From the NCBI RefSeq assembly GCF_000150275.1, contig NW_002060948.1, positions 248,001-312,000 of the forward strand: a stretch of 64,000 bases of DNA, given 5' to 3'. Under the pieces are notes generated by a model. It had not been told where the DNA came from and did not search any database. It saw only the letters and a list, made by a program, of their open reading frames with translations. Within the stretch, counting starts at the first letter, position 1. Every line of letters begins with the position of its first letter. Below, in pieces: positions 1-55,623 of this stretch. Both the position numbers and the translations under genes were made by a program. This stretch comes from Trichoplax adhaerens (Eukaryota; Animalia; Placozoa).

Positions 1-3000
1 ATCTATAAATTGCATAGCATTAGCTTGCTTGGCAGCATATATTATTTCTTCAGCAGTGATCGACTTGGCATCCTGGGTACCGTAAGCAATATTTTCATAG
101 ATTGTTGTAGAAAATAAGATTGGATTCTACAATGATGATAAATCAATATATTAGTCACGCGTTAAACTAGTTTATTTGTAATAATTTATATTATTTTCAT
201 TAGTATATAATAAAAGATGCACATTTCTGATCTTTCTAACCTGACTAACTAAGCCTACATTACTACGAATCCAACCAGGATTGATTGACCTTATATCTTC
301 ACCATTTATCAATACTTGTCCGATATCTGGATCATAAAATCGTAGCAACAGCGATGATAATGTGCTCTTTCCACTTCCACTAGCACCAACAACTGCAGTT
401 ATAGAACCAGCTGGAACGTTGAGAGTCAAATTTTTAAATATTACATCATTTGATCTTGAGGGATAGGAAAAGCCAATATTCTTAAAATCGATATCTCCGT
501 TAAGGATTGAAATATCCGGTATAATTCCGGCTAAATTATAATTATTGATATGATTTGATTTAGTACTGTGGCAATAATTACTTGTAGTTTCAGACGACAA
601 AACCTTCATTAATAAAGCGATAATTTTGTTATTACTGACCATCAATGGGAATTTTGGGTTTGCGATCAATAATCTGCCATAATCTAGTACTGGCACCGAC
701 TCCTCTCATAAGTTCAGAATAAAATGAGCTCATTCCTAACAATAATTGTAAAATAGACAATTTAGAGCCAGCAATATTGTAACCTAAATCAAAACTACTT
801 CAAATTCTTAAAATGGCTTACCTGCTATCGCAATACCAACATAGCCGGAATATAATAAGAAGGATGTCAATTGGCCGACAGTTAATTGCGCTTGCGACAT
901 CATCATTCCCCCATTCCATAGTACAGCTAATAGTAGAAGGTTACCGGAAAATCCAGTCTAAAATGACATTCATTTAATTTTCCGCTTTAGTGGTATCATA
1001 TTATAATTTATCGATAGTACATACTTTTCTAGTTAAATTACAATACAGTACTTACAAAGCCAAAAAAAGTACCATTTACAAAAGCCTGTTTATTGCCAAG
1101 ATGAAGAACTTTGTCGATTTTTTCTCCATATCTGTTTATTATCATAAATTTAACGTCAAGATATCTTTTACTTTTGTTAATAATGCGCAATCTTTTAATC
1201 GTCACGGCTTCAAATGTACATTCAAACCTTGTCAATTCCTTCATTTCATTCGCAAATGCTCGCACAGTAGTGAAATTGCTAATTTTTTCCTCGGCAATCT
1301 AATATGATGTGTTAAGAACAATTTCCTTCTTTATCGATTCAATAGTTATAATGTAACATTGCGCCAATATTTAATAAGCTGCTGCAATATTATAGTTACC
1401 TTACTCTAACTGCAGGAAATTATTTTGATAGTCAATATCACTTTACATACGGTACTCGACTGTGAATAGGATCAGTTTATATTTATGCGTTACCTCAGTT
1501 GATGCAGCTAAAGCATTTTGGGTTTTCTCGGATAAAGTTTTTAAATATCTTCCGTATAAGATGAGAACAATTGATAATGGCGCAACCATCCCAATACCAA
1601 CAGTAGCTAGGTAAGGTGATACGTAAATCTAATCCATTTCAAGAATATAAAGTGTACATGACCATTAGTAAGTATTTAGCATCGAATTAATATCGTAGAG
1701 AGGGGAATATGATTACGATAAAATTGATGTATAAAACAGCAGTCAATTACCATCATTGAAGCTCCAATGCTAACTTGCATAAGCGCTCTTAAGCCGTCTG
1801 AGAGATTATTGGTAATTGATAAGCCGACCACTGATGTATCTGTAGACATTCTGTTAATTAATTCCCCTGTACGAGTTTTATCGAAAAATGCAATCTCTTG
1901 CTTTACAACAGAACCAAAAAGTGATTGCCTAATATTTCTTACGATGCGTTGACCTGCAAAAAATAGTGAGCTCGAGGTCAGGTTTATTGAGTTTTTTCAA
2001 TAAAAGTATATAATTAAATATATTCCTTGAGATACGTTTAGTGACAGTCGCTGTAACGAAAGTAAAGTTTGATTCCTTCCTTGAATTGAAGTAACGTGAT
2101 TTACTGTACCTGCAGATTGTATCAGATAGACTCGACCAAAATTTGCTAAACTACCAATAAGAAAGATTCCCGACAAAATATAGCAAGTTTGGGTCAATTT
2201 ATCCATCATTGGACCACTGCGAGCGGATTCCGAACTGATTACATCAATAATATCACCCATAAAGTATGGAACTGACATTGTTACAGAAGAGGAAATAAAT
2301 AAAAGTATAACAGCACCTAGAAGAATAAAAATTCTGTATTTTTATATTGTATCATAATAATATTAACACAGTAGTTAAACTGATTGACATAGGCATCCAT
2401 CAAGGTAGTAAATGATACCGATAAAAGTAAAACAGCTTCCATAATTAACGAGCAGTAAGTTGGACAAATTACATCATAAAGAGTAGCAATACTGTAATAG
2501 CTTCCGTAATTACGGCATTATCTAGCAGTAGGCTGGCCATATTGTATCATAAAGAGCAGCAATACTGTAATCGCTTCCATCATTACAGAATGGACTAACA
2601 GTTGGCTCGATATACTGGATTGCATCATAAAGAGCAGCATTGTCCAGAACAGATCTTTCAGCAAATTTCCTATTATGGATCTACTCTCAATAATACCCAT
2701 AGATATTTATGGATAACGATTTCAATTAACTTTCATCCGTCACTTTAAAGTATTGAAATGGCAAGAATGGTAAAATGACTAGCACTTCAATGGTGTTATA
2801 CCTTTATCGACTGCTAGTGAACCAAGCTAGAGAAAGGCATTCTAGTCTACTTGTACTGTTATGTTTATACCGTCATGTTGTACTACATCAACAATAACAG
2901 CCGTTATTCATGCATGATTAAGATAGGATGAGTAGCCATTATTGAGCCGTCATTTTGCTCAATTTCTTTAGGCAGTTGCAGCTTGAGTCATTATGTGCAA

Positions 3001-4305
3001 CAACGATGCTATGCCATGTCAAAGAGAGATTTATTGATCTAGTAGTCTCGCAATTTCAAATGCAAAATAGGTCATGATTGTGCCATGATTCTAATGCAAA
3101 ATTTTCAACCTCCATCGACTACAAGTAGTAGTTATGCCACAAAGTTTCGATTCTACTGTACGTGAGAACGAGTCATTTTCCCCTCATATGGATACCAGCT
3201 GCAGATATTGTGCTTACGGTAGAGTAATTTATAATTTGATAATTTCAACTCCAGCTATCACAGCTATATAAACTACCATAACCTAAATTAGCTATCGCTA
3301 CCTTACATCTACTGTATAAGCTACATGCATACTGCACGAAGGCAATGGTACTACCATCAAGAGTATCGGAGTCAAATTAGAACACCCATTTTTGGCGTGT
3401 ATCGCGTTCTTGTAAGACGAAGAAGCTGTTACTAGTAATGAAAAAGCCAACATTGATTGCACTGAGTGTTACAGAACTTGACGATCCTTGTTTACGACTA
3501 GTAGGTACTTCTAATTAATCATTCAACCAGAATGGTGAGAGATTTATGATTGAAAAATTGACGTTGTTGATTTAATATGAGAGACTGTAGCAGAGGGGCA
3601 TTTGTAATGACATGGTGATATACTGTAAGCTTGATTGTAAATTTTTTCATCTCAGTTCGACTGAAGCTAGTGGAGGCTAGCGTAGAGTACACAGGTACTA
3701 ATTTACATTATAGCTAGTAGTAAATACAATTGCGTGAAGGTAAATCCCTCTCGTTTCACTCCATTCTCTAGTATTGAAATAAGTGAGTTTCCTTATAGAG
3801 AGCATGCTAAAGTTAGTTGAAGATTAAATAGAGTAGATAGGCTAGTTTAGGTCCGATTACGAAAGCTATTTTGTGACACTGAGTAAATAATATGTGCAGG
3901 ATGCAGCAGCATCAGACATTCACTTTATTGAATTTGCAAATTGCATAGCCATCCTTCCATTGCAGCACGAAGTGTTGTCATCAAATGATACACAGATAGA
4001 TGAAAAAAGATGTAGAATAACTTACATGTCAAACGCTTGGATTCAGGCTTGGCTAAAGTGATTAAACGTTGAAGTCCAGAAATATTAGACTTGGATTTTT
4101 TTTTAACTTGATTAGACGTCGATTCCACTGCAAATCGAACAGTACTCGAGTAAGAACGAAGTAAATGCCACCATCGACCATGACTAGCTAGCCGATTGTA
4201 AGGTCGATTGATAACGTTTACAGAATAAGAAGGAGTTATTGGAGTCATCAAGCTATACGTTAGTTTGCTAACTCCTCCTCTCAAGTACACTAATTTAGAA
4301 GCCAT
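1..4305 (-). CDS. ABCB10: Mitochondrial ABC half-transporter ABCB10-like (multi-exon, 3' end outside window)
   Basis: Exon 1 (4026-4305) encodes an Arg/Ser-rich presequence ending ...[16 protein letters not shown]. Later exons give [70 protein letters not shown], Walker A GASGSGKS and Q-loop VSQ/NPILF. GT-AG boundaries are phase-consistent where checked. Confidence 0.93.
2428..2640. repeat. Degenerate ~72-79 bp minisatellite (~3 units) in ABCB10 intron 1
   Basis: The core ATCATAAAGAG(C/T)AGCA recurs at ~2473, ~2546 and ~2624. The first two copies continue ATACTGTAAT(A/C)GCTTCC, and the intervening segments also resemble each other. Confidence 0.75.
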
Positions 4306-5357
4306 TAGGAGAACTTGCTAGGAATAGATGATGCAATCGATAAATTACTTTCATCCACAAATGAATTGGCTGGACTTGCAATGGTCTCCTAGCAATGGCG
4401 AGATTGGACTTTCCTATACTGGCACAGTATTAAAGTGGTCTAGAGAGCGGCCATGGGCGTATGTTATGGGCCAGTCCAAGTATAAGAATTCTTTTTACTG
4501 CTACAGTATGGCCAGAGGAGTGCCATTGAAGTACCTGTATGATGACCAACCGAATGAAATTCGACACCCGAGAGAGACGGACCGATGGACAGGTGGGTAC
4601 ATGGCCGGATGGGCGGACGATGCTAACGCGAAATTGGCGGTGCTGAATGCAGTATAGTGGATCGTGTTGTAGACTGCATTCAAGGTCTCAACGTAAAACC
4701 AATGTTGTACACGGGCCAAAATGTCAGCTAAAAGTGGATGGAGAGGTGGATAGTAGTCAATAATATCCATTTCCTCATTTTCTATGCTTGCCTAACTCAA
4801 AAGTAATCAATACGAAGTCATTCTAGCGGGATTGATGGTCGTATAAATGTCCCTCAAAGAGTGAGACATCCGTAAGAGCTTGAACAATGTTTGAAAAAAT
4901 GCTGTATGTTTTATCGTCAATCACCAACCAAGACCTCTTTTGCATATTGCTCCAACTCGGAGTAACTAGCCTGGCCGATAGCATCATTTGCACCGAGTCT
5001 GTGGACTAGTATGCAAGAGAGAGGGACTTGTAAAAAAAGTTTCTTCCCTCATCCTCAATCTATCTCGACCATCCTTGTGAATCAGGACATCATATTACAG
5101 TAGGCAGGGAGCTCATTGCAAAACAATCGTGCATAGTCCAGAGCCCACTAGCACTTGAAATGGAAATCAATCACTTATAGATTGACTACTGCAGGTGAAA
5201 AATGGATCACTCTGCAGTCTTTAGACTTACAGTACAGGCTAGTGACTTGAACAATGACTTCCATAAATAAATTAAATTTGAGTTCAATGCGCATCCTACC
5301 ATTTCAAGGTAGCTTAGTCAAGTAAGCATGACATCAACACGAAAGCAGGAAATCTGA

Positions 5358-38983: not shown

Positions 38984-38997
38984 GTTGCCATGGCAGC
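38984..38997. promoter_or_regulatory. Candidate RFX X-box upstream of PAQR paralog 2
   Basis: GTTGCCATGGCAGC is one mismatch from the palindromic X-box GTTGCCATGGCAAC. Confidence 0.45.
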
Positions 38998-41180: not shown

Positions 41181-44100
41181 ATGCAGTTTACTGTGGATGA
41201 TTTTGAGGTAATATTGTGCATAGTGTAGATTGTAGACGGAAATAATTTCTAGTTATGCTAGAATGACATGGAATTCTATCATTAATAAAATTACTCGAAA
41301 TTACGGATAGATTGTCCTATGCGATTTTGACAAGCTTATAGAAAGCATGCAATACTATAGTCGAACTGTTTGATATCAAGATACTTTAGGCCACTTTAGA
41401 ACCAATGTTAAGAAGCACGTTATTGTTATTCCATCTTGTCATGTAGGTCAAAAACAGTCTTCATCGTCAGTCTTTAGACCTATATACTAGAAGCTAGAAA
41501 GGATAGAGTAATAGACAAGCGTTGATATCAACTTTCTGTTGATTTTTGACCTTGACGAGTAATACAACGTAATGACGACAATCACTATACCTAAACACAA
41601 TTTCTTCTTGTAACTCCCTGATTCAGTTTGTTGGGCAATTCGTGTAATAACGTCTTTACTAAACTATTATTTATCAACAGAACGATTTCGATCTGAAAGA
41701 TTTCATTGAGCGAATCTCGCGTTCATCAACCGGTAGCGGAATTCGTGGCAAGCCGGAATCTTTCAATCCTCAAGCTTTGCATGTAACATTTGAAGAAGCT
41801 ATTGATAGCTTACAAAGTGTATTAAAAAGCACAGAAAATAGAGTTAATGCAATAGAAGAAACTTGCAAAACTGAAGAATATGAACATCGCAAGCGATTAC
41901 AATCACTGCAAAAGGCCTTAGATGTACGAAATTGAATTAGAATGCTTTTAATTTAATCTTATTCTATGGCTTCCACTTTAAATATTATCCACTACTCCAT
42001 GTAACTAATGTGTCAATTAGTGAGCTAGCCATACCCAAAATTAGCGATAGCTTAGTGCTTTTATTAATGATGTCCCTTTTACTCTGTGTATAATTCTTCT
42101 AACAATAATACTAGACTGCCATTGATCGTTTTGAAGATCTGGATCAACGTGTAAACTTTGTAGCGACGAAAGTTGTCCATGTCGGTGATCAATTAGAAGG
42201 GGTTAATATGCCCAGATCCCATGATGTCGAGGCACAAAAGTTAATGTCCTACTTTTCTGAATACATGGCAGACAGAGATCCACTGGTTATCGTTGTTGAA
42301 GATCCTAACAAAGTACGTTATATAGCATTTCTTGACCGATCTAGATGGTCTATACTAATTGCCAATGAATTAAAATTATTATTTTGAAAATTTTAAATCA
42401 GCTAAAGTCATCGTATCTAGCAATTTTACAATAACATCCAATTTCCATCGATACAAATAAATTGTTATTAGTAAAGACAGACTTTAGTGGGTATAACTCA
42501 AAACTAACATAGCCATATCCAATGCACTATATCAAGGTTGCCGAAGCAGCGGATATCATTCAAAACTTATATCATCTATCTCAAGATCTGCCTACCGAGG
42601 GGTATGTAGCTAGTAATATCAAGGCTATGTAAATATCTATCTCGTATTGTAGTATTAACGATTGGTAATACTGCCAAGTCTACTCCGAAATGAATGATTG
42701 TATTCAATTTTAAATTCTTTTCACAGATTTGAAAATGTCAAAAGCAGAATAAATGGTAAATAAAATAAAAATCATCTTACAAGAATTAAACAAGAATCAG
42801 CACAGATACTATCACTACATTAACTAAATTATCCCTTAAATTTAAGATTGCTTTTTAAATATTGAGCGAATGATTTGCTCTTGAACAGAAAAATACAAAG
42901 AAGTTGAAAACCGATTGAAATGTGAATTTGCGGTAGCACATCAAGCAAAAGATGTCAAGAAAATGAAGGATATTTCCAATACTTTAGCACCATTCAAGGT
43001 AATTTATTATTATGCTTTAATTGGACGTCTTACAAATGCGGAGGTTATTTATTAAGGCAATTTGTCCAATTTAAATATATATTACGGATCATAATGAAAG
43101 TCTGTATTATTTCTATGATATAGGGATATAATCAATGCATAGAAGATTTCATTACCGCTTGTCAAAGGGTATATTTGGAACTAGTGCAATGCTCAAATAT
43201 CTTTTCAATTTTCCAACTATTTTACGTGTCCTTTCATTAACAAATTGCTAATAAATACAGAATCAATTTACCTCGGTCAACGCATTTGATGATATTTTAC
43301 GAATTTGCGAACGAGTAAGTTGCCAAGGAAGTTTACATGATCATTATAAGATTCTATTATTATATTCAAAAGAATCGATGTCATTTAGCCTTGTCATTCT
43401 TCTCTTTACTGCCTTTATAGGCCTACGATATTATTAAGGAAGTTTTTAGCGATTATAATCATATTATGGCAACTCTAGTTGAAAATATCTTTGATGGACA
43501 TGTCAAGGTAACAATTAGCTGTAACAATATCACATTCTATTTGACTGTTACTATGCACAAAATAATCAGAACGATTTGTTTTAAAGGAATACGTCCATAC
43601 AAATCTTGATAAACTTTACCAAAATGACAAAGAAAAATATTTGAAATCCCTCTATGATTACTATGACAGGTATATACATAGGTAGAATTAACACTTATCG
43701 GCTACTGCTAGGATAATAACATACTGCTGTCATTCTAAAGACAGTAATCAAGTTATCCAATTTTCTTCTCTCAAGATTTCACAAAGTCACCAGTATAATC
43801 ACTAAAAAGTATGACTTAAGTTCAGAGGTCAGCATTGTAAATAAAAGCAAAAAGAGCATATTTGGTTCATACATGGAAGACTATATTAGTGTTGAAGTAA
43901 AACATTTGCGAGATATGTTTGATAATTCTATATCGTCGTACTACTCGTCAATTGGTCATCAAAAAAGGCAAATTGCAACCGGAGGGTAAAGTTTTTGAAA
44001 TATAAAAATGAAGCACTGTAAATACTGTGATTTCCTTGTAAGTCTTATTCTGTACTTGACTTTTTAAATAAGACTCTCTCAAGCATTCCTAAAACGTTCA

Positions 44101-45747
44101 ACTGATACAAGTGGTATAGGAGATGAATCTTTAGTCTCTCAAGAAGTAGCAATTAATATGTTATCCGAAAGTCGAAATGCCATTTTACGATGTCATCTGG
44201 TATCTTCTTTAGTAAAGTTTTTAACCCATAACTACAAGGAATTGACTAATACAACAATTTATTCTATATTATTATAGCTTGCACCGAAACTGAGCTTACC
44301 AAATTATATATGGCAGATTTTTGAAGTTCTACTTGAAAAACTATGTTTAGACCATATTAGTTATGCTATTGATATCAGTCTCCAAAGTATGCAAATTGTT
44401 GAAGTTTATTAATAAATTAGGACAGAACTTAAAAATTATTAAGTAGCAATTGCAAATTTTTTATTGATACATTTTTGCAGTGATTCCCAGCTCGTCTCCT
44501 AATACGCAGCCAGATGGCCGTTTTTACGATGTTTCCGGACAAGCAAACGCAATTATTCAATTATTAAAAAAACATTTCAACGAAAATGTTTTGCCTGTTA
44601 TTGGGTAGGCTGTTACATAATTGCATAACACTGTTTCCATTATCTGTGCTTAGAATTTATTATTTTTTCAACCATATTTTCAGGTCTACCGCAATTTACG
44701 ATAGTAGTATCCAAAAAAGAAATGCCATATTACAACAACTAGAAGAAAAAATTGATCAGGGACTTGAAAAGTAAGATAAATAGTATATCTTTGAATAACT
44801 AACAAACGCTAAAAAATTGACTTATTTATATTTTAGATCTGTTCAAGCAGCGATTAGTTGGTTAAAGCATATACTGTCAACTGAACAAAAGAAGACTGAC
44901 TTTAGACCAGAAGATAGTAAGATCGTCGTGGAATTGACCACTCCTGTAAGTCGCATAACTAATGCATGCTATTAGCTGGTCTATTAGCGTATTTTCTGTA
45001 TAAAATTCCCATTAAAAGTATGTAATTTAAAAAGTTTACTTGTTATACAGGCTTGTTCCAGTTGTATTCAGTTTATTAGACTACAAAGAAAGTTAATAAA
45101 AAGTTGTTTAGATGGTAAAAATGTTGAGGAAGTATTAAAAGAATTTGGCGTACGATTTCATCGAATTTTATATGATCACTTACAACAATTCGCGTACAAC
45201 TCCATGGGTAAATATTGATAACGAGTGTTTTATGCTTTTAGTTTTAATGGTATAAACCTAATTCCATTCCTATACGAATTGATTGTACTTTTTTATCTGT
45301 AGGTGGAATGTTTGCTTTAGCTGACGTTCACAGTTACCAAGATTGCATTAAAGAATTCCAGGTATTTTTTTAAAACTTCCAATTTAAGTAAACCATTACT
45401 ATAACAACTGAATGAGCTTTGTACCTATAGTATCTGAGCAACTTCACTGTGTATTACTCGCTTCAGATACCATTGTTAGATAAATTATTTTCAACTCTAC
45501 ACGCACTATGCAAGCTCTTAGTCACAAACCCAGAGAATATACGTCAACTTTGCTGCGAAGAACAACTGGTATGTAGTTCATTTAATGTAGGAAAATAGTA
45601 CATCACTGGCACAGATTAATTTAATCTAACTGCATTATTTTAAACCCTATGACGTTGTAGGCCTCCATGGATCGAAATGTTTTACAGCAATTTGCCAATT
45701 TAAGAACAGATTATAAAACTGCTCGATTAGCAAAGCACTTTCAGTGA
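41181..45747 (+). CDS. EXOC5: Exocyst complex component 5 (Sec10), multi-exon
   Basis: Motifs MQFTVDDFE/NDFDLKDFIERI...PESFNP, VNFVATKVVHVGDQLEGVNMPR, AADIIQKLY, EQKKTDFRPE, LDGKNVEEVLKEFGVRFHR and LRTDYKTARLAKHF*. The GT-AG junctions I checked keep frame. Confidence 0.96.
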
Positions 45748-46542
45748 TATAATACAGTAATAATTCCAACCTGTAGCGATATATTTTGTAGCAATTATTG
45801 TAATTTTACATGGACATAACTAGTTACATCTGTTATGGACTGGTATCATTAATGGGTCCTCTTTAAAAATCGATAACAATACAAGGTACATATTCAGTTT
45901 ATGGATTTGTTAGATTGTTCTTATCGTTTAACTGGAATATATGAACGAAGGACTACGACAGTCATCATCGTGTATCAATCGCAATAAACATCACAAATGG
46001 TCCGTTACTGTAGATTTTTAATCACAGTTTTCATGTAGTTTCTACACAAAAAGGTATACTATGTCTATCATGTAATGACCATTGCAAGTTTTATCGTAAT
46101 GTTAAATTTGTCTTATGGATTGACCTTAATCATTGTCTCATATCTTTTACAATTACATATTTACTATAACTGGAGTATCGCAATTATCGGTACTATTTAC
46201 GGCAACAATTTTATGTTGTTTGTCCTGTCATGTTAAGGGTATCGAAATTGAGAAATTATTTGTTTTCTATGTAAAACATTAGAAAAAATCAGATGTAAAA
46301 TATTACATTTCTGTTTGGATATATCATGTTCAAGCTTTTGTGATAGATTCGTTAAAAAGAACGTAATGTTAACTCCAACTTAACAGGATTACTTTTACTT
46401 AGTAATATGTAAATGATAATATGATTATAATTATTAAACGATGTACTGTACAAGGGTAACATTGTAGATAAATTTAGAGTATCATCATACATACAATCCA
46501 AATTACCTATACGAAGTAATTGCCAATAGATACGCCTGAAAC

Positions 46543-48621
46543 TTAAAGTAGCATTTTCAAGAGCATAATTTGACTATCAGTTATAATATTATCTTGAATA
46601 TCATCAATTAGTTCAGCATCATACTTCTGTTCGTAAGCGATTTTGATATCATCTAGATCGACCTGCATCAAAACAAATTTCACATCAGTTACAATTACTT
46701 TAACAAGCTTTTCTACCTGCTAGAGTTTAAAAGATAGTCGATCATATTAGTAAATACTATCATAGTATTAAATCTGATTTTAATGTGGCTTTCACAACAT
46801 AACGATATTTAATGCATTAAGCATTTATAATTCCGATCTTATCGAACCTCATGTCTAGTTATGATCACCCTTGAAATGGTTTTCAAATCCATCTCATTAA
46901 TGGCAGCATGTAACACGACAGCAAAATAACCCGGTGTATCAGTTACACATTTAAGGATTGACTTTAAACTCTCATTAGTTGGGCTTTGAATTTTTTCATC
47001 AACAGTTTGATAAATATCCCCAGTGGTACTTTCCTAGACGTTATCCAAATGTATTATGATTAAATTCAATATGCATGTACCGGTATATCTCATATACCCG
47101 TATAATTATCGAATTATTCATTAAGTAATTTATGACGTTACCTCTTTAAAATGATTACAAACTTCCCTGATATGATTAAAGTTTCGTGTTGACAATGTGG
47201 TATTCAATTTGGAATTATCTGATGCCCAATCTTCATTGTCGGCCTTCATAGATCAGTTATCGATTAATTAATATGAATAATTAAGTTCCTCTCATGATAT
47301 CATTTCATTGATACGGCACTATGTACCATTAAACTTAGGAATATTTATCGAAATACATTCAAATTGTTTACAAATATCCACTCATAGAGAGAGAAAGAGA
47401 AAACAACTTCACCTTCATTGTATCCACTATCGTACTATAGTCTAATAAGAATTTGTGCTCACCTCAAGCAACTGACGAACATCATCTTTAACAGCGGACT
47501 CATCCACAACATCATTGATTTCTCTCCTTGTCTGAAGAATAATTAATTAATGCAAGCGCTGTATAAGTAAAATTGGTGTAGCTTTTGGTAGCACATCCAC
47601 ATTAGGGTAACGACTATCGGCACAAGCTATGCAAGCATTCACTATATTAGCTATAAGTTATACCGTAATAAATGATGTCAAGAGTTTTCCTATTCTAGAC
47701 TGGCGATCTCCAGATAGATTCGCTTCCAATGTCATACCAAACTCAGATTCATATACTTCAGCAATTGCTTGTAATTCCTATTCAATAAATTTATAACCAG
47801 CATTATATATGGTATTCTATATTACTACAATGCTGAGCATACCAATTTCAGATATATTTGCAAATGACCTACGGTTTGACACTAACATTTATAAATAATA
47901 AATAATCCTTACCAAAAATGTTCTACTGCAAACAATTTCAATCATAACAGATGCTCTATTTCCACTTCCCTAATTCAATATCGAAATAGTGTGTATTAGT
48001 CTAATAAAACATAAGGCTATTGACTAGAATCGAGCTTTCATCTACTGTACATATCGATCTCAATCTAAGTTTACCCATAGATTCAATCAATCATCAAACC
48101 TGAATTGCATCATGAAGCGCCTTTGCATCGTATTCTGATTTCTCCGTTAGCATCACGTTAAGAAGCTCTGTATAATCACCTCCCAATTCAACTTTAGTAT
48201 CGCTTAATAAATCCTAACAAATTTTAAATAGTTCTAGGTAAGAAAAAATCAAATAACAAATGATAACCATTTAAATCCGTTCTTGCCTGTGAATATTTTG
48301 AAGTATATGCTTTAGAAATTTGTATTCGTTGGTCTCGTCTTCTTTCTCCCAGCAGATCAACTATGGTATCACCACCTGAATCTAATCATTCGTATGATAA
48401 TTTATGCAAAAAATATCATTATTCGCACTTCACTATATTACATTAAAATAATTTATTTTATATTTTATCACATTATAAGATAATTTAACCTCCTAAAAAT
48501 GCAGCAGTATATACTATTCGATTGAATTCTAATATTATTATCGCCTACCCAAATCACCAAAGGCATGATACAAAATTTTAGCATCATCATCAGGATCAAA
48601 ATTTGTCGATTCAGGAACATC
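46543..48621 (-). CDS. Four-repeat annexin core with degenerate Ca2+-binding loops (3' part of the composite locus)
   Basis: Exons 48549-48621, 48287-48381, 48100-48213, 47913-47969, 47664-47777, 47463-47531, 47142-47243, 46848-47033, 46543-46662. Motifs FDPDDDAKILYHAF, QRIQISKAY, ELGGDY, YDAKALHDAIQGSG, IEIVCSRT, TRNFNHIR, TPGYFA, RVIITRHEVDLDDIK. Confidence 0.9.
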
Positions 48622-48739
48622 CTATTTTTGTATTCGTTATGAAATAGTAATATTGATCATCAAATTAATCTAATCGTCCAACTCTCTTCAAGACTTTACT
48701 TAAATACTTAAAAATAAAGCCTTATATTTATTCCTTTAC

Positions 48740-50148
48740 CGATTTTTTATCCTGATCATCTACTTCCTTAGAATCTTCATTTTTGCCATCTCCATGAACT
48801 GATTCATTTTCTTTCTTACTATGATGACTGCTATGGCTACTGCGACGACTACTATTTCCATGACTGCTGTGATGGCTACTATGTTTGTTGTCATCATCGC
48901 TACGATGGCTATGACTGTTATGATTTCCACCACTGGAGCGACTACCAGCATTACTACGATCTGAAGGGATATGTCCATGGTTTTCGTTTGCAGTTGCTAA
49001 ATCTTGATCATGATTGCTCTTATTATCTTCCTGCTGCTGTTCATCAGCCACATTATCATTCTGATCTTGATTATCTGCCTGTTCTTGGTCTCCAACCTGA
49101 TCTTTATTTTCAACTTGGTCGTGAATTTCAGTTTCGTCCTGATTTTCAGCCTGGTCTTGAATTTCAGTCTGATCTTGATTTTCAGACTGATTCTGATTTT
49201 CAGCCTGGTCTTGAATTTCAGTTTGGTCTTGATTTTCAGACTGATCTTGATTTTTAGACTGATCTTGATTTTCAGCCAGATCTTGATTATCTAGTTGATC
49301 ATGATTTTCAGCCTGGTCTTGATTATCAGGCTGATCTTGCTTTTCAGACAGATCTTGACTTTCAGCCTGATCTTGAATATCTAGTTGATCATGATTTTCA
49401 GGCTGATCTTGATTTTCAGGCTGATCTTGATTTTCAGGCTGATCTTGATTTTCAGACTGAGCTTGATTTTCAAACTGACCTTGATTTTCAATCTGATCTT
49501 GATTATCTGGTTGATCATGATCATCAGCTGAGACAGGTTGAGTTTTATTTACATCGTGAAGGTCTTCATCAGCCAATTTATCCTGATCATCATATACTTC
49601 GCGATTCGTTTCGTGATCATCAACTGGTGAAGGCTGATTGCTCCTGGCTTCAGATTTTGCGTCCTCAAGTAGCTCTAACTGCCGATCCCTATCATCATGA
49701 TTTTCGCTAACACCTTCTTTCTTATTTAGAGCATCGTCAGTTTCATGATGCTCATCATCGCTATAACTCGTAGCACCATTCATTAAATTGTCATCATGCA
49801 TCGATTTTTGATCATCAGGTGTTACAGCTCTACTAGAGTGTTTACTACTGTGTTCACTATCGAATTTATCACTGTAAGGTGTCGGAGTTCGACTTTTATC
49901 CATTTTTTCTTGATGGTTATCGCCATCACGTTCATCTATGTGGCTATCTTCTACAGCAACGGGAGATCTAAGGTCATCATCCGGTGATTTTGAGTTTTCG
50001 TTTTTCGATTTTATATTAGGAAGAACTTTCGGTTTTGGTTTAATTTGCTTCTCTGTCCCATTAGCTTTCTTTACCGGTGGTAAAACATTATGGTTATTTT
50101 AAAGCTTTTATTAGGTACAGTTTTATGACGTGCTCGATTTGGCGCAGC
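48740..50148 (-). CDS. Large low-complexity acidic/Ser-His-rich exon linking the CFAP97-domain exons to the annexin core
   Basis: Contains the 391-aa ORF. A donor at TCG|GTAAAG (48740) splices in phase 0 to the first annexin exon. The 5' part has a frame break near 50097-50104. Confidence 0.75.
49060..49510 (-). repeat. Coding 18-bp tandem repeat (QDQxEN hexapeptide, ~20+ units)
   Basis: The plus-strand unit TGATCTTGATTTTCAG(G/A)C is repeated and translates on the minus strand as QDQPEN/QDQSEN/QDQAEN/QDQTEI. Confidence 0.92.
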
Positions 50149-50315
50149 CTGAAATGATATAATTCTCTATTATTATTATATTCAATGTTTAGAAGGAGAT
50201 AATTTCGATATTGCTCTACTTTAAATTATTTTCTATCTTATCATTAGAGATCTGTATCTATATAGATGATCAATCATCCTCTTGACTACGAATTCAATCT
50301 TAGTATTCTGCATAC

Positions 50316-53300
50316 CACTTTAGGAACATTATTTCTCTCAACTTCATCATTACTTTTAGTACGATGATGCCGGTAGCTGTCTTTAGAATAGTCCTTAAGA
50401 AGAACATTGTAATTAAATTCATTTATGCCGACATTTACAGATAATATAAAATTGATAAGATTGTTAATGAACGGTAGCGTTAGTCTAAACATTTAGTGTG
50501 TAAAAACATGGATAACCTTTAATTATTCCAATTACCTTATTATTGCCTCCTCTTAGTTGCAGCTGAATAATTATCCAGAAATGTGAATTAACAAAACGTA
50601 AGTAAGGAAAATTCGTACTATATCCGGATTATCAGCATGGTGCTATTTAAATAATATAATCTTTTTCTCCTTAAAAGTATTCTATAGCGCTTATAGACAT
50701 TACTAACATTCATAGCGACTTACAGATGTTTTTACGTCTACTCGATAATCTTTAGTCGTATCATCATGACACTTTAAGTAGTATAAATGCTTCTGAAAGT
50801 CTTCCTCCTACGAAATGAAGAAAAATAGATTGATAAAGGATTGATTCGGTACAGATATAGTCGCATACTTCACATGATAACAGAGTAGAACTGATTGAAT
50901 TATAACTTTTAACATAAATTGGATCATCCTCTATAATACTGTATTACATAATATATTCCGATATAGTATGGGCAAGTAATAAGCCTTACTATCAGCATAG
51001 TTTCTGCATATTAATTATATAAAGCAACAACATAGCATGAAATTGATTTAATGTAATTAAAGTAAAATTGATAATTTATCATATTTTACCCATCGTCCAG
51101 TATGATAGGTTGGCCCAATGCTTTTTAGTTTTCCTAAAAGAGCCTAAATTATACAAGCAATTATAATTACTGGAGCAATAAGTCTTACCAATATACAAAA
51201 TTTAATCAATTCGAACATTCATTCATACACCTGTAGGTAGTACATTACAGTCAACACTACAAGAAATTAGTGACATATCGAAAATATCCATGCACCTGTC
51301 ATTATTCATAATGTGGTCTAAACTATGTTATGTTTTGAAAGATAAACTACAGACAATATAAAGTACTAAAGAAAAACATCACTACTTTTTATAAGCTTCG
51401 GTTAAATATGGCATAACCATTAAAACAGCTGAACATAATCAGAATAAATATGTGCGCAGATTTCAAATTCCATTCACTAAACATTTTTTGATTTTAAGAG
51501 TAAATTCATTTTATTCACCTGATTTTCCTGATTAATTTTATTAACCACTGCCTCTCGATAGGGTTGATTTAAGCTACCATAGAATATTAAAAAACGATTA
51601 AGAAATTAATTTATCCATGTAGCCTAATGACAATGGTAAACCACAGTCATTACTGCATCATTTTAATAAAGCCACTTTATAGAAACTCGAGCTTCTAAGA
51701 GTATATCTTAGCTTAATTATCCGATATTTTGATTAAGGTACAACTCTGCCTATTTATGTTTTGTTTTAAATTAATTATATGACTAATAAGAAATTCTAAA
51801 GAGGAATACTGGATTGTGCGATGTTAATCTATTAACGACTATTAATAAATGTGACGTTAAATTTTTCGGACGGCAAATATAAATATTTTCACATTGTAAC
51901 TCACGCATTCCGAATGAGCTAATATGCTCCACACTGTGATACTCTACAACGTACTTTGTTTATAAAATCTATAAAATTGTATGCAGTCTACAGTATGTTA
52001 ATTCAATAATCTGTTGTCTAACACAACCGTATATATGTCACGGTGAACCCCGGGAATCAGTTTCTATTAACTAGAGGTCATGAAAGGTTCATAGACAGAA
52101 AAACGACTATAACTTTGAGGCAGAGTATGCTAATGAAGTAATGTAGTTATTCAACCATGCATATCATCTTAACACGTTGAATAAACCGAATACTTTCACT
52201 TATCTAATAATTGACCTAATAGTTGTTTAAAGTGTGAGTGAAATTATTTCAGGCCAATCTGAGTCATTTCTTCTTATTATTTACAAAATCGCTATTATGC
52301 CATTTTCCAGTCTATTACAAGATATCAAGCGACGAGAAGCAATTTTACCTTTTAGCCCCTTGCTCATTCCAGTTATCCACTTGGCCCCGCCTGCTCATAA
52401 TATGCGACATTTTAGCTAGTAGAATTCTATTCTCCTGCTTGATAGTTGCCTGACGATCTTCCTCTTGCTATTGGCGATACAAAATACATAAACATCAATA
52501 TTAACTCTCTAAATGGATATAATCAACAATAAACATAATATCATAGCAACCTCTAACAATCCCATTCCGAATATTAATGACATAAAATAGGCAAATGAAA
52601 TGCTTACTATATTTAAATAAATTGAATACATTGAAACTAATTGAACTATAAAGAGGTTATTTTATTTCATTTCCAATGCCACATATATTCCACTACTATT
52701 TTGTTAGCCCACTCCCAACTCCAAAATCAACAGTAATGATTACCGTAATATGAATATAAATTGTACGTACTGTATATTCTTATATATTAAATTAGAGATT
52801 GCGGTAAACAGTACAGTTAGTATAGCATGGGAAAAATTCTGTAATTGCCATCAGGTGTATTCAAAAATAAAATGATTTCTTGAATGTAAAAATTAGTTCC
52901 GCTGTAAACGATGATTACAATATATGAATGAATGTTAAAAATTCTGTCATTTAACTTCCGACCTTCATCTTTTTCATTCGAATCTGTAAATGAAGATATT
53001 CTTTTGGTGGCTTATTATCAATATCGGCTTTCATCCGTCGAACCTATAAACCGCATATAATCCAGAAATGTAAATTCTATCGAAATCAAAAATTAATTTT
53101 ACAAGTGGATCATATATTAAACTATTGTAAAATAGCAATAAAAAATTTTCCGAACAATAGTTTCACAACATAATCGAAACGAACAGAAACAAAATAATTA
53201 AATGAAAATTTAATTTTGGTTTTGTTTTTTCGCTGCCATAAACATCATAGAAATTTATAAGACAGGAAAATAATAATAGACTGCAAGAATTGGAACACGA

Positions 53301-54775
53301 TATTATAGCCTAGAATAATGTCAAATCCATAATTAAATGTAGCATCATGCTATAACCATCAGTCGCGGTATAATGAACATCATTTCACTTTTCTGCTCTC
53401 TCATACATGTATAGATATGATCGTTATTGTAAAATGCATTATCAAATTGGTCACCAAAAACTTCCCATAAGTAAAATAAAATATATAAACGTTGATAGAA
53501 AGGCCAGTAAATAATCAATAACGCTAGTTTAATTCCCTTAATCTAGCTGCTAATAAGTAGAATCTTTTAACTTTTTCTTACATGTACACCAATATTTAAT
53601 ATTAATCATTCGCAAATCTAAATTATTGTCAGTCTGATGATTCAAATATTAATTACTTTGATGGCATTATTCAAGAACTTGAAGGTCTAATAAAGAACTA
53701 TTTCAATCTCAAAACCTTACGTACATGTCAGTACTCTTACTGATTAGCTAACGATGGAGAAGCTTTAATCAATCTTGCACTAATATTAACTTCAAATATT
53801 GGATCTACTGAATAACGGATTATGTTAAAACTGATATCTCTCAGAATAGTCTAATACAAGTCTCTTCAATAAGCTAATGCTGAGTTTATACAGCATTTCC
53901 ACAGAGTATCATAGATACAGAACAAGATTTTACAACTTGTCCTGCATTATCTATTAATTCATAAATTGTTTTAAGCTGTAGATATTTCCTTAAATCAGAC
54001 TGTTATTATCATAACTTTGTATTTAGATAGCTCGATTATTCAGTCTAACTTGTTTTGAAGCGAGATGGATCTTCATACTATATTTGCTATGATAAGATAT
54101 TTAACTAAATGATTAAATGTAATTCAATAGAATATCTGCTATATTATATACTCCCTGACTCTTTCGTCGTAATTACTATACTTTACTAATAAACGTACTA
54201 CTCATCCTCGTTTTAAATTAAAAATAAAGATAGTACAGAATTAATCGGTAATTTTAGTAATATGCGTATGATATTCTACTTTAATTGATTTTAGTTACAG
54301 CAATTGATCTAGATATAGTAAGGATACAGGTTTATGATCATGAGTTAAATTTAATAGATAAAGGCTGTGGAATTGAATGAATATCGGTTTTCATCCTATT
54401 AACAGCATTAGGAACCTCATCTAGTGACTATTCATTAATAAGAAAATATTCTACGTATCTTATGTCAGTAGTTAACAGACAATATTTAGATATCCGTAAC
54501 TCGTAAGTTAACATTTAATGGGTTTTTTATTTGCATATTTATGAAAAAGTACGTTGTTATTTTCCAGTTAGTTTTCGGATTCAAACTAAAGTAGTAATAT
54601 GGAAAGATGCTAATTTTCTCAAGCTTTCAACAATTTTTAATTTCTTCTCGGCAATAGAAAATGTCTAGAATCTTAGTTTGCTTACTTTCTTCATATGTAA
54701 ATCATATGCACGATCTTCCCATCGCTTCTGCAATAACTTGCTTGAAGGCACGAAGCTGGGTGTTGATTGTGGCAT
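50316..54775 (-). CDS. CFAP97/KIAA1430-domain exons (CFAP97D1/D2-like; 5' part of the composite locus)
   Basis: Phase-consistent exons: 54686-54775, 52963-53043, 52349-52467, 51519-51573, 51090-51143, 50724-50807, 50536-50562, 50316-50393. Translation: SKLLQKRWEDRAYDLHMKKV...IDNKPPKEYLHLQIRMKKMKQEEDRQATIKQENRILLAKMSHIM...VDNWN...SLN...KINQENQALLGKL...PTY...WEEDF. Confidence 0.85.
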
Positions 54776-55623
54776 ATTTCCAAATTAGAATCCAATGTAA
54801 TAAGGTTTAATAATTAATTTTGGTATCTTCTCTTATTGCTATAGCTTGATGGCTATAGCTTAATTGCTACTACGATGTATTCGAATACGCTCGACGATTT
54901 GGAATTGATTTTACTATAGTTAAAGATAGTAGTTTAAGAAGATAAGATTAGAGTTATAATTACATCGGTCGTTGCATCAAAAAAATTAATCCATCCAGCA
55001 CAGCTATTTGTAAAAATTAAAATATATCAATTGATCAAGTCATTTGCATTAGCAATCTAACAGACAATCATTATTAACTTCAAATGGAATTCTAATTCAT
55101 ATCCAAAACTGATTAATTCAGGATTGATTTGCAGTAATTATAACTTTAAATCATCATTTCCATATTTAATATAAGTTGGCTATCGGTTGATAAAGGTTGC
55201 TATGGGAATATCGTCTTCAGCAATAGAGCAAGCTTACTAATGTAACAATTTCTATCGAAAGCCAGCCTTTCCTAACATTAGCTAAGTTAAAATTTAACCA
55301 AATAGATGATATAACCGGTTCAACTTGATATTGCTTCGCTATTTAGCTTACCTTTAGACCTATCGTTTGCCAATTATTTCGATTGAGTTATAATGAGCTA
55401 CCGACGGTCGTTCCCCAATTTGTCTAAACTAAGTATCACACCGTTTTGTGTACATCTTCTAAATTGATTAACAGTAAGGGTCAATTGTATGACTCATTAG
55501 GTTATAGATTGGCCATAGACTTGATTCGATAAGCTGCTGAGCTACTTTTTCCCAATACTAATAAGCATACCCAACCAGATCTTTCTACTTGTCATCAATC
55601 GACGTCAGGACACATTGTTCCGG

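Follow-up and report, generated by a model that had tools for sequence, protein, structure and literature searches.

On its minus strand, from 54775 down to 46543, the window (the whole stretch of 64,000 nucleotides of Trichoplax adhaerens DNA that was analysed) quite probably holds a single gene of 18 exons, which encodes a protein of about 975 amino acids in three parts (Table 1). The first part (residues ~1-215) would be a CFAP97D-type module, made up of the Pfam domain Hmw_CFAP97 and two flanking motifs; the second (residues ~215-666) a strongly acidic, repetitive and probably disordered spacer with a His/Ser-rich tract at its end; and the third (residues ~667-975) a divergent annexin core of four repeats. 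The fusion of CFAP97D and annexin as such is well supported, given the splicing, the reading frame in RNA, the domain matches and the relatives in hexacorals. The grading of the single gene as quite probable applies to the explanation as a whole, i.e. one gene, one base in an A-run and a counterpart in hexacorals. The initial annotation had read the locus as a CFAP97D domain, an acidic spacer and an annexin core in one open frame, and this reading is sustained by the frame in RNA and by the recurrence of the layout in hexacorals.

Splicing and reading frame

Every intron within 46510-52500 was matched by RNA contigs from three studies (runs X5, X4 and X9), including the two junctions that the initial annotation had singled out for checking (50316>50148 and 48740>48621), each of which is present in all three runs. 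Upstream of this interval, a loose contig end at 52469 reads into exon 2 (52963..53043) in the three RNA runs. The eight exons that had been proposed for the CFAP97D part agree in phase and have GT-AG borders throughout; what had been missed is a micro-exon of 27 nt (50562-50536), which the RNA reveals as the ninth exon of this part. The alternative acceptor that had been offered at 50068 is joined in none of the RNA, as all three runs splice to 50148. Within the annexin part, the RNA places one acceptor at 48381 and not at 48375, and the intron 48286-48214 is of the GC-AG kind. A scan of the window for RFX X-boxes yielded 18 matches, where 17.7 were expected, and the X-box-like site upstream of the gene (55196-55209) is thus at chance level.

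The RNA contigs are interrupted at 49421-49426, inside the repeat, and the CFAP97D and annexin exons are not joined in any single record. A Logan contig does not represent one molecule, and the same contigs extend by around 3 kb into Sec10, a convergent gene. Given this run into Sec10, the continuity of the contigs is by itself no proof of a single transcript, and the case is built on the uninterrupted frame together with the orthologues.

In the assembly, the CFAP97D frame terminates at a TAA (50073-50071), and an in-frame ATG follows downstream at 49903. The RNA of all three studies (X5, X4 and X9) has one additional base in the A-run at 50097-50100 (a T inserted behind 50096), which merges the CFAP97D frame with an open frame of 456 codons (50098-48731). 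With this base, the coding sequence comprises 975 codons with zero internal stops, so that the length of about 975 amino acids that had been predicted for a continuous product is recovered (stops were counted and SNPs classified on the concatenated exons, with an N at the absent base). Two SNPs flank the indel (50104 and 50072), and each is synonymous in the frame that is predicted for its own side. In the assembly the gene is split by a stop that results from one base absent from the A-run, be it a base-call error of the reference or a minor allele, and the expressed frame is intact. Membership of the fusion family depends on this RNA-supported base.

Table 1. Exons and other features of the proposed gene (positions in the window)
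Feature	Position	Strand	Evidence or remark
Exon 1, start codon ATG 54775-54773	54686..54775	-	N-terminal motif common to coral fusion proteins
Exon 2, Hmw_CFAP97 profile positions 5-31	52963..53043	-	Pfam E 0.012, 16.7 bits
Exon 3, Hmw_CFAP97 core, profile positions 33-60	52349..52467	-	Pfam E 9e-7; RNA joint 52349>51573
Exon 4	51519..51573	-	RNA joints on both sides; phase consistent
Exon 5	51090..51143	-	RNA joints on both sides; phase consistent
Exon 6, KHLYY...TKDY motif	50724..50807	-	RNA joints; tblastn to coral/anemone fusion proteins
Micro-exon of 27 nt	50536..50562	-	RNA joints 50724>50562 and 50536>50393 (X5, X4, X9); GT-AG
Exon 8	50316..50393	-	RNA joints, including 50316>50148
Large exon, end of CFAP97D part and acidic linker (470 codons in RNA form)	48740..50148	-	Open frame; RNA contigs
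A-run, one base shorter in assembly than in RNA	50097..50100	-	X5, X4, X9
Tandem array in linker	49061..49521	-	Tandem Repeats Finder
Annexin exon 1, start of repeat 1	48549..48621	-	RNA joint 48740>48621, three runs
Annexin exon 2, repeat 1	48287..48381	-	Pfam Annexin E 0.003; RNA joints 48549>48381 and 48287>48213; GC donor
Annexin exon 3, end of repeat 1 and start of repeat 2	48100..48213	-	RNA joints
Annexin exon 4, repeat 2, near-canonical calcium loop	47913..47969	-	RNA joints; translation
Annexin exon 5, repeat 2	47664..47777	-	Pfam Annexin E 0.01; RNA joints
Annexin exon 6, between repeats 2 and 3	47463..47531	-	RNA joints
Annexin exon 7, repeat 3	47142..47243	-	Pfam Annexin E 6e-4; RNA joints
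Annexin exon 8 (longest), end of repeat 3 and start of repeat 4	46848..47033	-	RNA joints; best match Nematostella P0001
Last annexin exon, repeat 4, stop codon 46545-46543	46543..46662	-	Pfam Annexin E 0.003; RNA joint 46848>46662

The shorter A-run could be a real allele, heterozygous or private to the clone, of a fusion gene that is nevertheless ancestral and expressed; such an allele would give a truncated CFAP97D and perhaps an annexin with an internal start. The RNA of X9, which is closest to the reference (only two substitutions elsewhere), nevertheless departs from it at 50104 as well as at the indel, and these differences, lying 8 nt apart, look like a haplotype and not like random error; at 49132, too, the reference has a state of its own. 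Against this, the assembly holds neither a second copy nor a haplotig of the junction, and the short form occurs in no RNA contig, although rare variants are lost from contigs and transcripts of the short form may undergo degradation. We therefore regard a real allele as rather improbable. Far less credit is due to the assumption of two neighbouring genes, one for a CFAP97D-like protein of 221 amino acids ending at the TAA and one for an annexin with a long acidic N-terminus starting at ATG 49903. Their transcripts would overlap, or the two be transcribed together, and the RNA contigs would have merged them. The assembly does have both the stop and the downstream in-frame ATG, Logan contigs do merge neighbours here (the 3' end of the annexin part into Sec10), and no single RNA record covers the whole gene. 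Yet the additional base in all three RNA runs abolishes the stop, the CFAP97D frame is then without a stop until that of the annexin itself, the ~170 nt between stop and ATG leave no room for a polyadenylation site and a promoter, and at least six species of hexacorals have orthologous fused frames, all of which makes two genes very unlikely. That slippage in transcription or RNA editing adds the base is unlikely for an A-run of 4 nt.

Composition of the three parts

Exon 3 alone matches the Hmw_CFAP97 family (PF13879) with 30.0 bits, above the gathering cut-off of 25.6 bits, so that the KIAA1430 profile on which the initial annotation had staked its reading does recognise the protein. Exons 2 and 3 cover adjoining positions of the profile in colinear order, and the matches to Hmw_CFAP97 and Annexin likewise follow one another colinearly along the gene. 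In a search of the whole genome with the Hmw_CFAP97 profile the locus scored 31.5 bits and was one of three CFAP97 loci. Among protein structures, exon 3 matched the PDB chains 8snb_4T (E 3.4e-6), 9e78_3r (E 1.2e-4) and 9e2g_4R (E 2.4e-3), the first of which was deposited as 'Cilia- and flagella-associated protein 97' in what we take to be the structure of a sea urchin sperm doublet. Exon 1 showed a weak colinear match to residues 11-31 of the same chain (E 0.22), and the KHLYY...TKDY motif of exon 6 matched no PDB chain.

The Hmw_CFAP97 domain is what the Trichoplax gene has in common with CFAP97D1 and CFAP97D2 of mammals, Hemingway of Drosophila and 8snb_4T, a family that is axonemal. These are small stand-alone proteins without annexin, in contrast to the Trichoplax frame of 975 codons in RNA. 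The PDB chains matched by the module measure 158-231 amino acids, and a Trichoplax product in the range of stand-alone CFAP97D proteins (~160-230 amino acids), namely one of 221, follows only from the shorter A-run of the assembly. CFAP97D1 is listed among the external MAPs of sperm doublets in PMC11779644 (legend of Extended Data Fig. 3), and has been placed together with TSSK6 at the junction of doublet and outer dense fibre, on the outward face of the doublet (PMC13066092). Both the integrity of the axoneme and the motility of sperm require it (PMC7444823, PMC11779644, PMC13066092).

The initial annotation had the acidic linker splice in phase into the annexin core, in agreement with the RNA junctions and with the open frame of the large exon. 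After the indel, the linker counts 452 residues, with 117 D+E against 43 K+R, and in none of 2000 shuffles was it free of stops. Tandem Repeats Finder describes the array within it as 24.7 copies of an 18-nt period with 79% matches, which corresponds to around 25 hexapeptide units rich in D, Q, E and N. No Pfam family was recovered for the linker exon, and its start aligned weakly with the coral proteins (E 0.07). A word-indexed search with the 453 amino acids of the large exon, confined to proteins of 249-793 amino acids and so shutting out one of 975, gave no match at E<=0.001. Between strains, the linker differs by 11 nonsynonymous and 5 synonymous changes.

The four-repeat annexin core of the initial annotation could be retraced with Pfam Annexin (PF00191), which matched four exons in order, one per repeat, with 18.0, 16.3, 20.3 and 18.0 bits; each of these scores lies below the cut-off of 25 bits, as the exons are fragments. 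The genome has at least four annexin loci, of which that of the fusion gene is the most divergent: in a genome-wide scan its exons fell short of E 0.01. Between strains the core differs by one nonsynonymous and four synonymous changes, and it is under purifying selection. Inspected by eye, the translations do not conform to type II calcium sites (a G-x-G-T loop with an acidic residue some 38 positions on): the loop is near-canonical in repeat 2, distorted in repeat 1 and absent from repeats 3 and 4.

Annexins have a C-terminal core of four repeats, and a long variable N-terminal region sets their localisation. Annexin A6 has eight repeats, annexins A7 and A11 have long N-termini, and the Trichoplax protein likewise would combine a C-terminal four-repeat core with a long N-terminal region. 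The tail of A7 and A11 is rich in Gly, Pro and Tyr, whereas the N-terminal region in Trichoplax consists of the axonemal domain and the acidic repeat. The Trichoplax calcium loops are mostly degenerate, in contrast to those of A6, A7 and A11.

Relatives in hexacorals

In a search of 1.84 billion protein representatives with annexin exon 8, the best match was a protein of Nematostella vectensis (P0001; LOC5516017, XP_048586536.1, 1969 amino acids), at residues 1871-1929 with E 3e-7, i.e. within the last annexin core of that protein. P0001 and P0003 were the only annexin-family matches, and a Trichoplax gene model containing this exon was not among the proteins returned. P0001 carries Hmw_CFAP97 at residues 32-128 and 15 annexin stretches. 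Among the apical-organ genes of Nematostella, PMC4300403 lists the JGI models 96324, 96179 and 34056 ('Annexin A') and 240545 (KIAA1430/C17orf105); should these prove to be pieces of LOC5516017, in situ data on the fusion would already be at hand and would point to cells bearing long cilia. The same layout was found in Actinia (A. tenebrosa LOC116300181), Stylophora, two Acropora species (in A. digitifera as 'annexin A6-like' X2/X4) and Oculina, so that, Nematostella included, at least six hexacoral species have the fused frame. A coral-like Logan transcript contig of 5.7 kb holds an uninterrupted open frame of 1646 amino acids with both domains in this arrangement. The distribution was drawn from Trichoplax and hexacorals. 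The hexacoral fusion proteins are all computer-predicted and uncharacterised.

The correspondence extends beyond the domains, as exons 1, 2, 3 and 6 of Trichoplax are colinear with the N-termini of the coral fusion proteins. By tblastn, the N-terminal motif (PSSKLL..W) in exon 1 is 61% identical to residues 13-35 of P0001 (over 23 residues), and the KHLYY...TKDY motif in exon 6 is 52-62% identical, over 21 residues, to P0001, P0007 and P0009, all coral/anemone fusion proteins. Within ~3 kb around each of the three CFAP97 loci of the genome, the two motifs were present at one, the fusion locus. A search of the ESM Atlas with the Acropora N-terminus gave no usable match. Judged from these sequence comparisons, the Trichoplax gene would quite probably be the counterpart, in placozoans, of a CFAP97D-annexin family of hexacorals that is itself uncharacterised. 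The initial annotation had stated that it knew of no characterised protein with this architecture, and in the literature searched we indeed found no description of a fusion between CFAP97/KIAA1430 and annexin, while uncharacterised predicted proteins of this kind exist in databases.

The hexacoral proteins share with Trichoplax the N-terminal module with its two motifs, followed in one open frame by a low-complexity linker (acidic/basic in their case) and annexin repeats. They are 1076-2533 amino acids long and contain 6 to 19 annexin stretches, in one to several cores, whereas in Trichoplax there is one divergent core of four repeats and no tandem of annexin modules. Their linker before the first annexin measures ~100 amino acids, compared to the acidic repeat of 450 in Trichoplax, and their calcium loops look canonical where those of Trichoplax are mostly degenerate.

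A possible link between axoneme and membrane

A tether between axoneme and membrane, as the initial annotation had suggested, is a plausible function for the protein, albeit a doubtful one. As CFAP97D1 does in sperm, the N-terminal module would reside on the outside of the axonemal doublets; the acidic spacer would point outward, repelled by the acidic surface of tubulin, and the annexin core would engage acidic phospholipids of the ciliary membrane. In corals, this engagement is proposed to be calcium-dependent, as their sites look canonical; in Trichoplax it is possibly calcium-independent or weakened. That the fusion protein resides in cilia, binds microtubules and binds membranes is, taken jointly as a mechanism, equally tentative. 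The tether gains plausibility from the placement of CFAP97D1 among the external MAPs of sperm doublets (PMC13066092, PMC11779644), and loses some because the canonical calcium-site motif is missing from three of the four repeats in Trichoplax.

We give close to even chances to a reading in which the fusion protein is real and is not a mechanical tether. The CFAP97D module may merely bring an annexin to the axoneme or basal body, there to sense calcium or lipid, to serve in vesicle/ectosome formation or membrane repair, or to scaffold other proteins; or else the divergent core in Trichoplax may have lost its lipid binding. The degeneration of three of the four calcium loops agrees with this, as do the annexin stretches of the coral proteins, which at 6 to 19 exceed the needs of a simple tether, and the fast evolution of the linker. 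The purifying selection on the annexin core, on the other hand, the outward-facing doublet surface on which CFAP97D1 is found (PMC13066092), and a spacer whose 450 residues would more than span the gap between doublet and membrane argue for the tether. A broader and more speculative version of the tether has the CFAP97D-annexin proteins form the doublet-to-membrane links all along the shaft of placozoan and cnidarian cilia. The tether would then be calcium-switchable and go back to the last ancestor that both groups share, bilaterians having later lost it or split it up.

Electron microscopy shows connections that run from the outer doublets to the membrane of the cilium, and to our knowledge few of their proteins have been named outside the transition zone. 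The reference assembly splits the Trichoplax gene at a one-base difference, and the coral relatives are at present mislabelled as 'annexin A6-like' or 'uncharacterized'. In the proposed gene, one polypeptide couples a module of the outward doublet face to the lipid-binding annexin family, and this coupling is conserved in two early-branching animal phyla. Considering the conserved fusion of a doublet module with an annexin, the CFAP97D-annexin proteins are a concrete candidate for a link between the ciliary skeleton and the membrane, and one that is approachable in the genetically tractable Nematostella.

Gene structure and domain content

The window is AT-rich DNA of a eukaryote, and on its minus strand a combination of stop-to-stop translation and reading of the DNA revealed a series of short exons with consistent phases between 54775 and 46543. 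The intron borders are GT-AG throughout, with 48286-48214 (GC-AG) as the sole exception. Contigs from four sequencing runs, each from a different study, were aligned over 46510-52500; three of these (X5, X4 and X9) behaved like RNA and the fourth (X6) resembled low-cover DNA. Every intron within this range was recovered as a joint in all three RNA runs, including the two splices that the initial annotation had queried (50316 to 50148 and 48740 to 48621). The RNA added a 27-nt exon at 50562-50536, shifted one acceptor six bases upstream, to 48381, relative to the first sequence-based model, and made no use of the acceptor at 50068 that had been considered as an alternative. With these small corrections, the exon chain originally read from the DNA was confirmed.

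Pfam domains were assigned exon by exon. Exon 3 matched Hmw_CFAP97 (PF13879, profile positions 33-60; E 9e-7, 30.0 bits against a cut-off of 25.6) and exon 2 matched positions 5-31 of the same profile (E 0.012). The CFAP97D-type (KIAA1430) domain that was proposed earlier is backed by a match above cut-off on exon 3. Likewise, the proposed four-repeat annexin core was recovered as Annexin matches (PF00191), with one matching exon for each of the four repeats (E 6e-4 to 0.01). According to the translations, the calcium loop of the Trichoplax annexin is near-canonical in repeat 2 only. The 1.4-kb exon between the two domains (48740-50148) matched no Pfam family. It contains a tandem array at 49061-49521 (18-nt period, ~25 units) and its C-terminal end is a His/Ser-rich tract. 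Within 48740-48990 (minus strand) the acidic D/Q/E/N repeats give way to a His/Ser/Arg-rich composition over the last ~85 linker residues; this segment preceding the annexin core could be metal- or pH-sensitive, or rich in phosphorylation.

The frame break and the continuity of the transcript

In the assembly, the exon starting at 50148 runs for 25 codons up to a TAA at 50073-50071, and the long open frame lies in a different phase from the frame entered at 50148. The A-run at 50097-50100 is one base longer in all three RNA runs than in the assembly. When this base was modelled as an N at the A-run in the script that assembled the spliced coding sequence, 975 codons without a single internal stop were obtained, in agreement with the ~975 aa estimated initially. 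The 452 residues following the indel include 117 D+E against 43 K+R, and shuffling the linker DNA 2000 times yielded no stop-free sequence. The SNPs at 50104 and 50072 are synonymous in the upstream and the downstream frame, respectively, and therefore agree with the extra-base reading. A second copy of the junction was not found in the assembly.

The short A-run in the reference is either a base-calling mistake or a genuine minor allele. X9, the run nearest to the reference, shows no more than three differences from it, and two of these, separated by 8 nt, fall at the break, a pattern that hints at a haplotype. At 49132, 50104 and 50097-50100 the reference is unlike every run covering these positions, X9 being identical to it elsewhere, and these sites represent either a locally poor consensus or the rarer haplotype of the sequenced clone. 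Comparison of the reference with the runs gave one nonsynonymous and four synonymous differences in the annexin core, and 11 and five in the linker. The annexin core is conserved; the linker retains its frame and composition, not its sequence.

The contigs that carry the annexin extend ~3 kb into Sec10/EXOC5, a convergent plus-strand gene, and they also break at 49421-49426, within the linker repeat. Continuity within a contig hence does not prove that there is one molecule, and the case for a single protein is built on the frame that stays open in RNA and on relatives with the same architecture. The Sec10/EXOC5 exocyst gene itself (41663-45595) was recognized from four open segments with Pfam matches to Sec10_N and Sec10_HB; its transcript and the annexin 3' end are linked in RNA contigs, so the two 3' UTRs probably overlap. 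Elsewhere, an RFX X-box-like site is present at 38984-38997, a near-perfect palindrome that departs from the 14-nt consensus at a single position on either strand and may be the promoter mark of a ciliary gene elsewhere in the window.

Relatives and orthology

The longest annexin exon (62 aa) was used as query against 1.84 billion protein representatives. Five proteins reached E<=0.001, two of which are annexins by Pfam. The top match (E 3e-7) was XP_048586536.1, an uncharacterised protein of Nematostella vectensis (1969 aa), in which residues 32-128 match Hmw_CFAP97 and 15 stretches match the annexin family in Pfam. Further relatives were sought with the N-termini of this protein and of an Acropora relative. 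The Logan contig derives from an unidentified hexacoral-like sample and its N-terminus is 68% identical to Acropora.

Relatives with the fusion layout and the other CFAP97 loci of Trichoplax
Layout	Source	Coordinates	Basis
Hmw_CFAP97 + annexin	Actinia tenebrosa		N-terminus search
Hmw_CFAP97 + annexin	Stylophora pistillata		N-terminus search
Hmw_CFAP97 + annexin	Acropora digitifera		N-terminus search
Hmw_CFAP97 + annexin	Acropora muricata		N-terminus search
Hmw_CFAP97 + annexin	Oculina patagonica		N-terminus search
Hmw_CFAP97 + 12 annexin stretches	Logan contig SRR5963056_1100 (L006)	205-5145	uninterrupted 1646-aa ORF, 5.7-kb contig
Hmw_CFAP97	Trichoplax (L001/L004)	G000:C1401:971499-972293	63.7 bits
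Hmw_CFAP97	Trichoplax (L002)	G000:C1410:4804826-4805071	40 bits

Trichoplax exons 1, 2, 3 and 6 align colinearly to the N-termini of the hexacoral fusion proteins. Two motifs lie outside the Pfam domain, one near the N-terminus and the other being KHLYY...TKDY of exon 6, and of the three CFAP97 loci in the genome (~3 kb around each) the fusion locus is the only one with either motif. In Acropora the domain is followed by an LPxV/LPxI stretch, and the residues that come directly after the indel in the RNA frame show a weak alignment to it (E 0.07). The genome scan covered 105.6 Mb in 1414 contigs. The two other CFAP97 loci lack the flanking motifs within the compared DNA, no annexin is located near them, and they are probably the stand-alone CFAP97/CFAP97D genes. 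At least three annexin loci occur elsewhere in the genome, none adjoining a CFAP97 locus. All in all, we are confident that the fusion gene is real.

Known biology of the parts

Exon 3 also matches PDB entry 8snb, chain 4T ('Cilia- and flagella-associated protein 97', E 3.4e-6), which we take to be a sea urchin sperm doublet, and two more axoneme entries. Annexin cores bind membranes, and in a simple cilium the outward face of the doublet is the membrane-facing side.

In sperm doublets, CFAP97D1 is classed as an external microtubule-associated protein (PMC11779644, legend of Extended Data Fig. 3). CFAP97D1 forms a module with TSSK6, positioned at the junction of doublet and outer dense fibre, and EFCAB3, and in Tssk6 knock-outs this module is lost while luminal proteins are kept (PMC13066092). 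These two reports put the family of the N-terminal module on the outward doublet face. Knock-out of Cfap97d1 is described in PMC7444823 as impairing axoneme maintenance and male fertility. The genes given as enriched in the Nematostella apical organ in PMC4300403 include JGI models 96324, 96179 and 34056 ('Annexin A') and 240545 (KIAA1430, C17orf105-like), which could be fragments of the Nematostella fusion gene (LOC5516017).

No description of a CFAP97D-annexin fusion was found in the literature searched; the fusion combines two known kinds of domain and the same architecture is already present in databases as unnamed predictions. The initially proposed function as an axoneme-to-membrane tether is reasonable, if doubtful as a mechanism. 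The fusion itself is common to Trichoplax and hexacorals.
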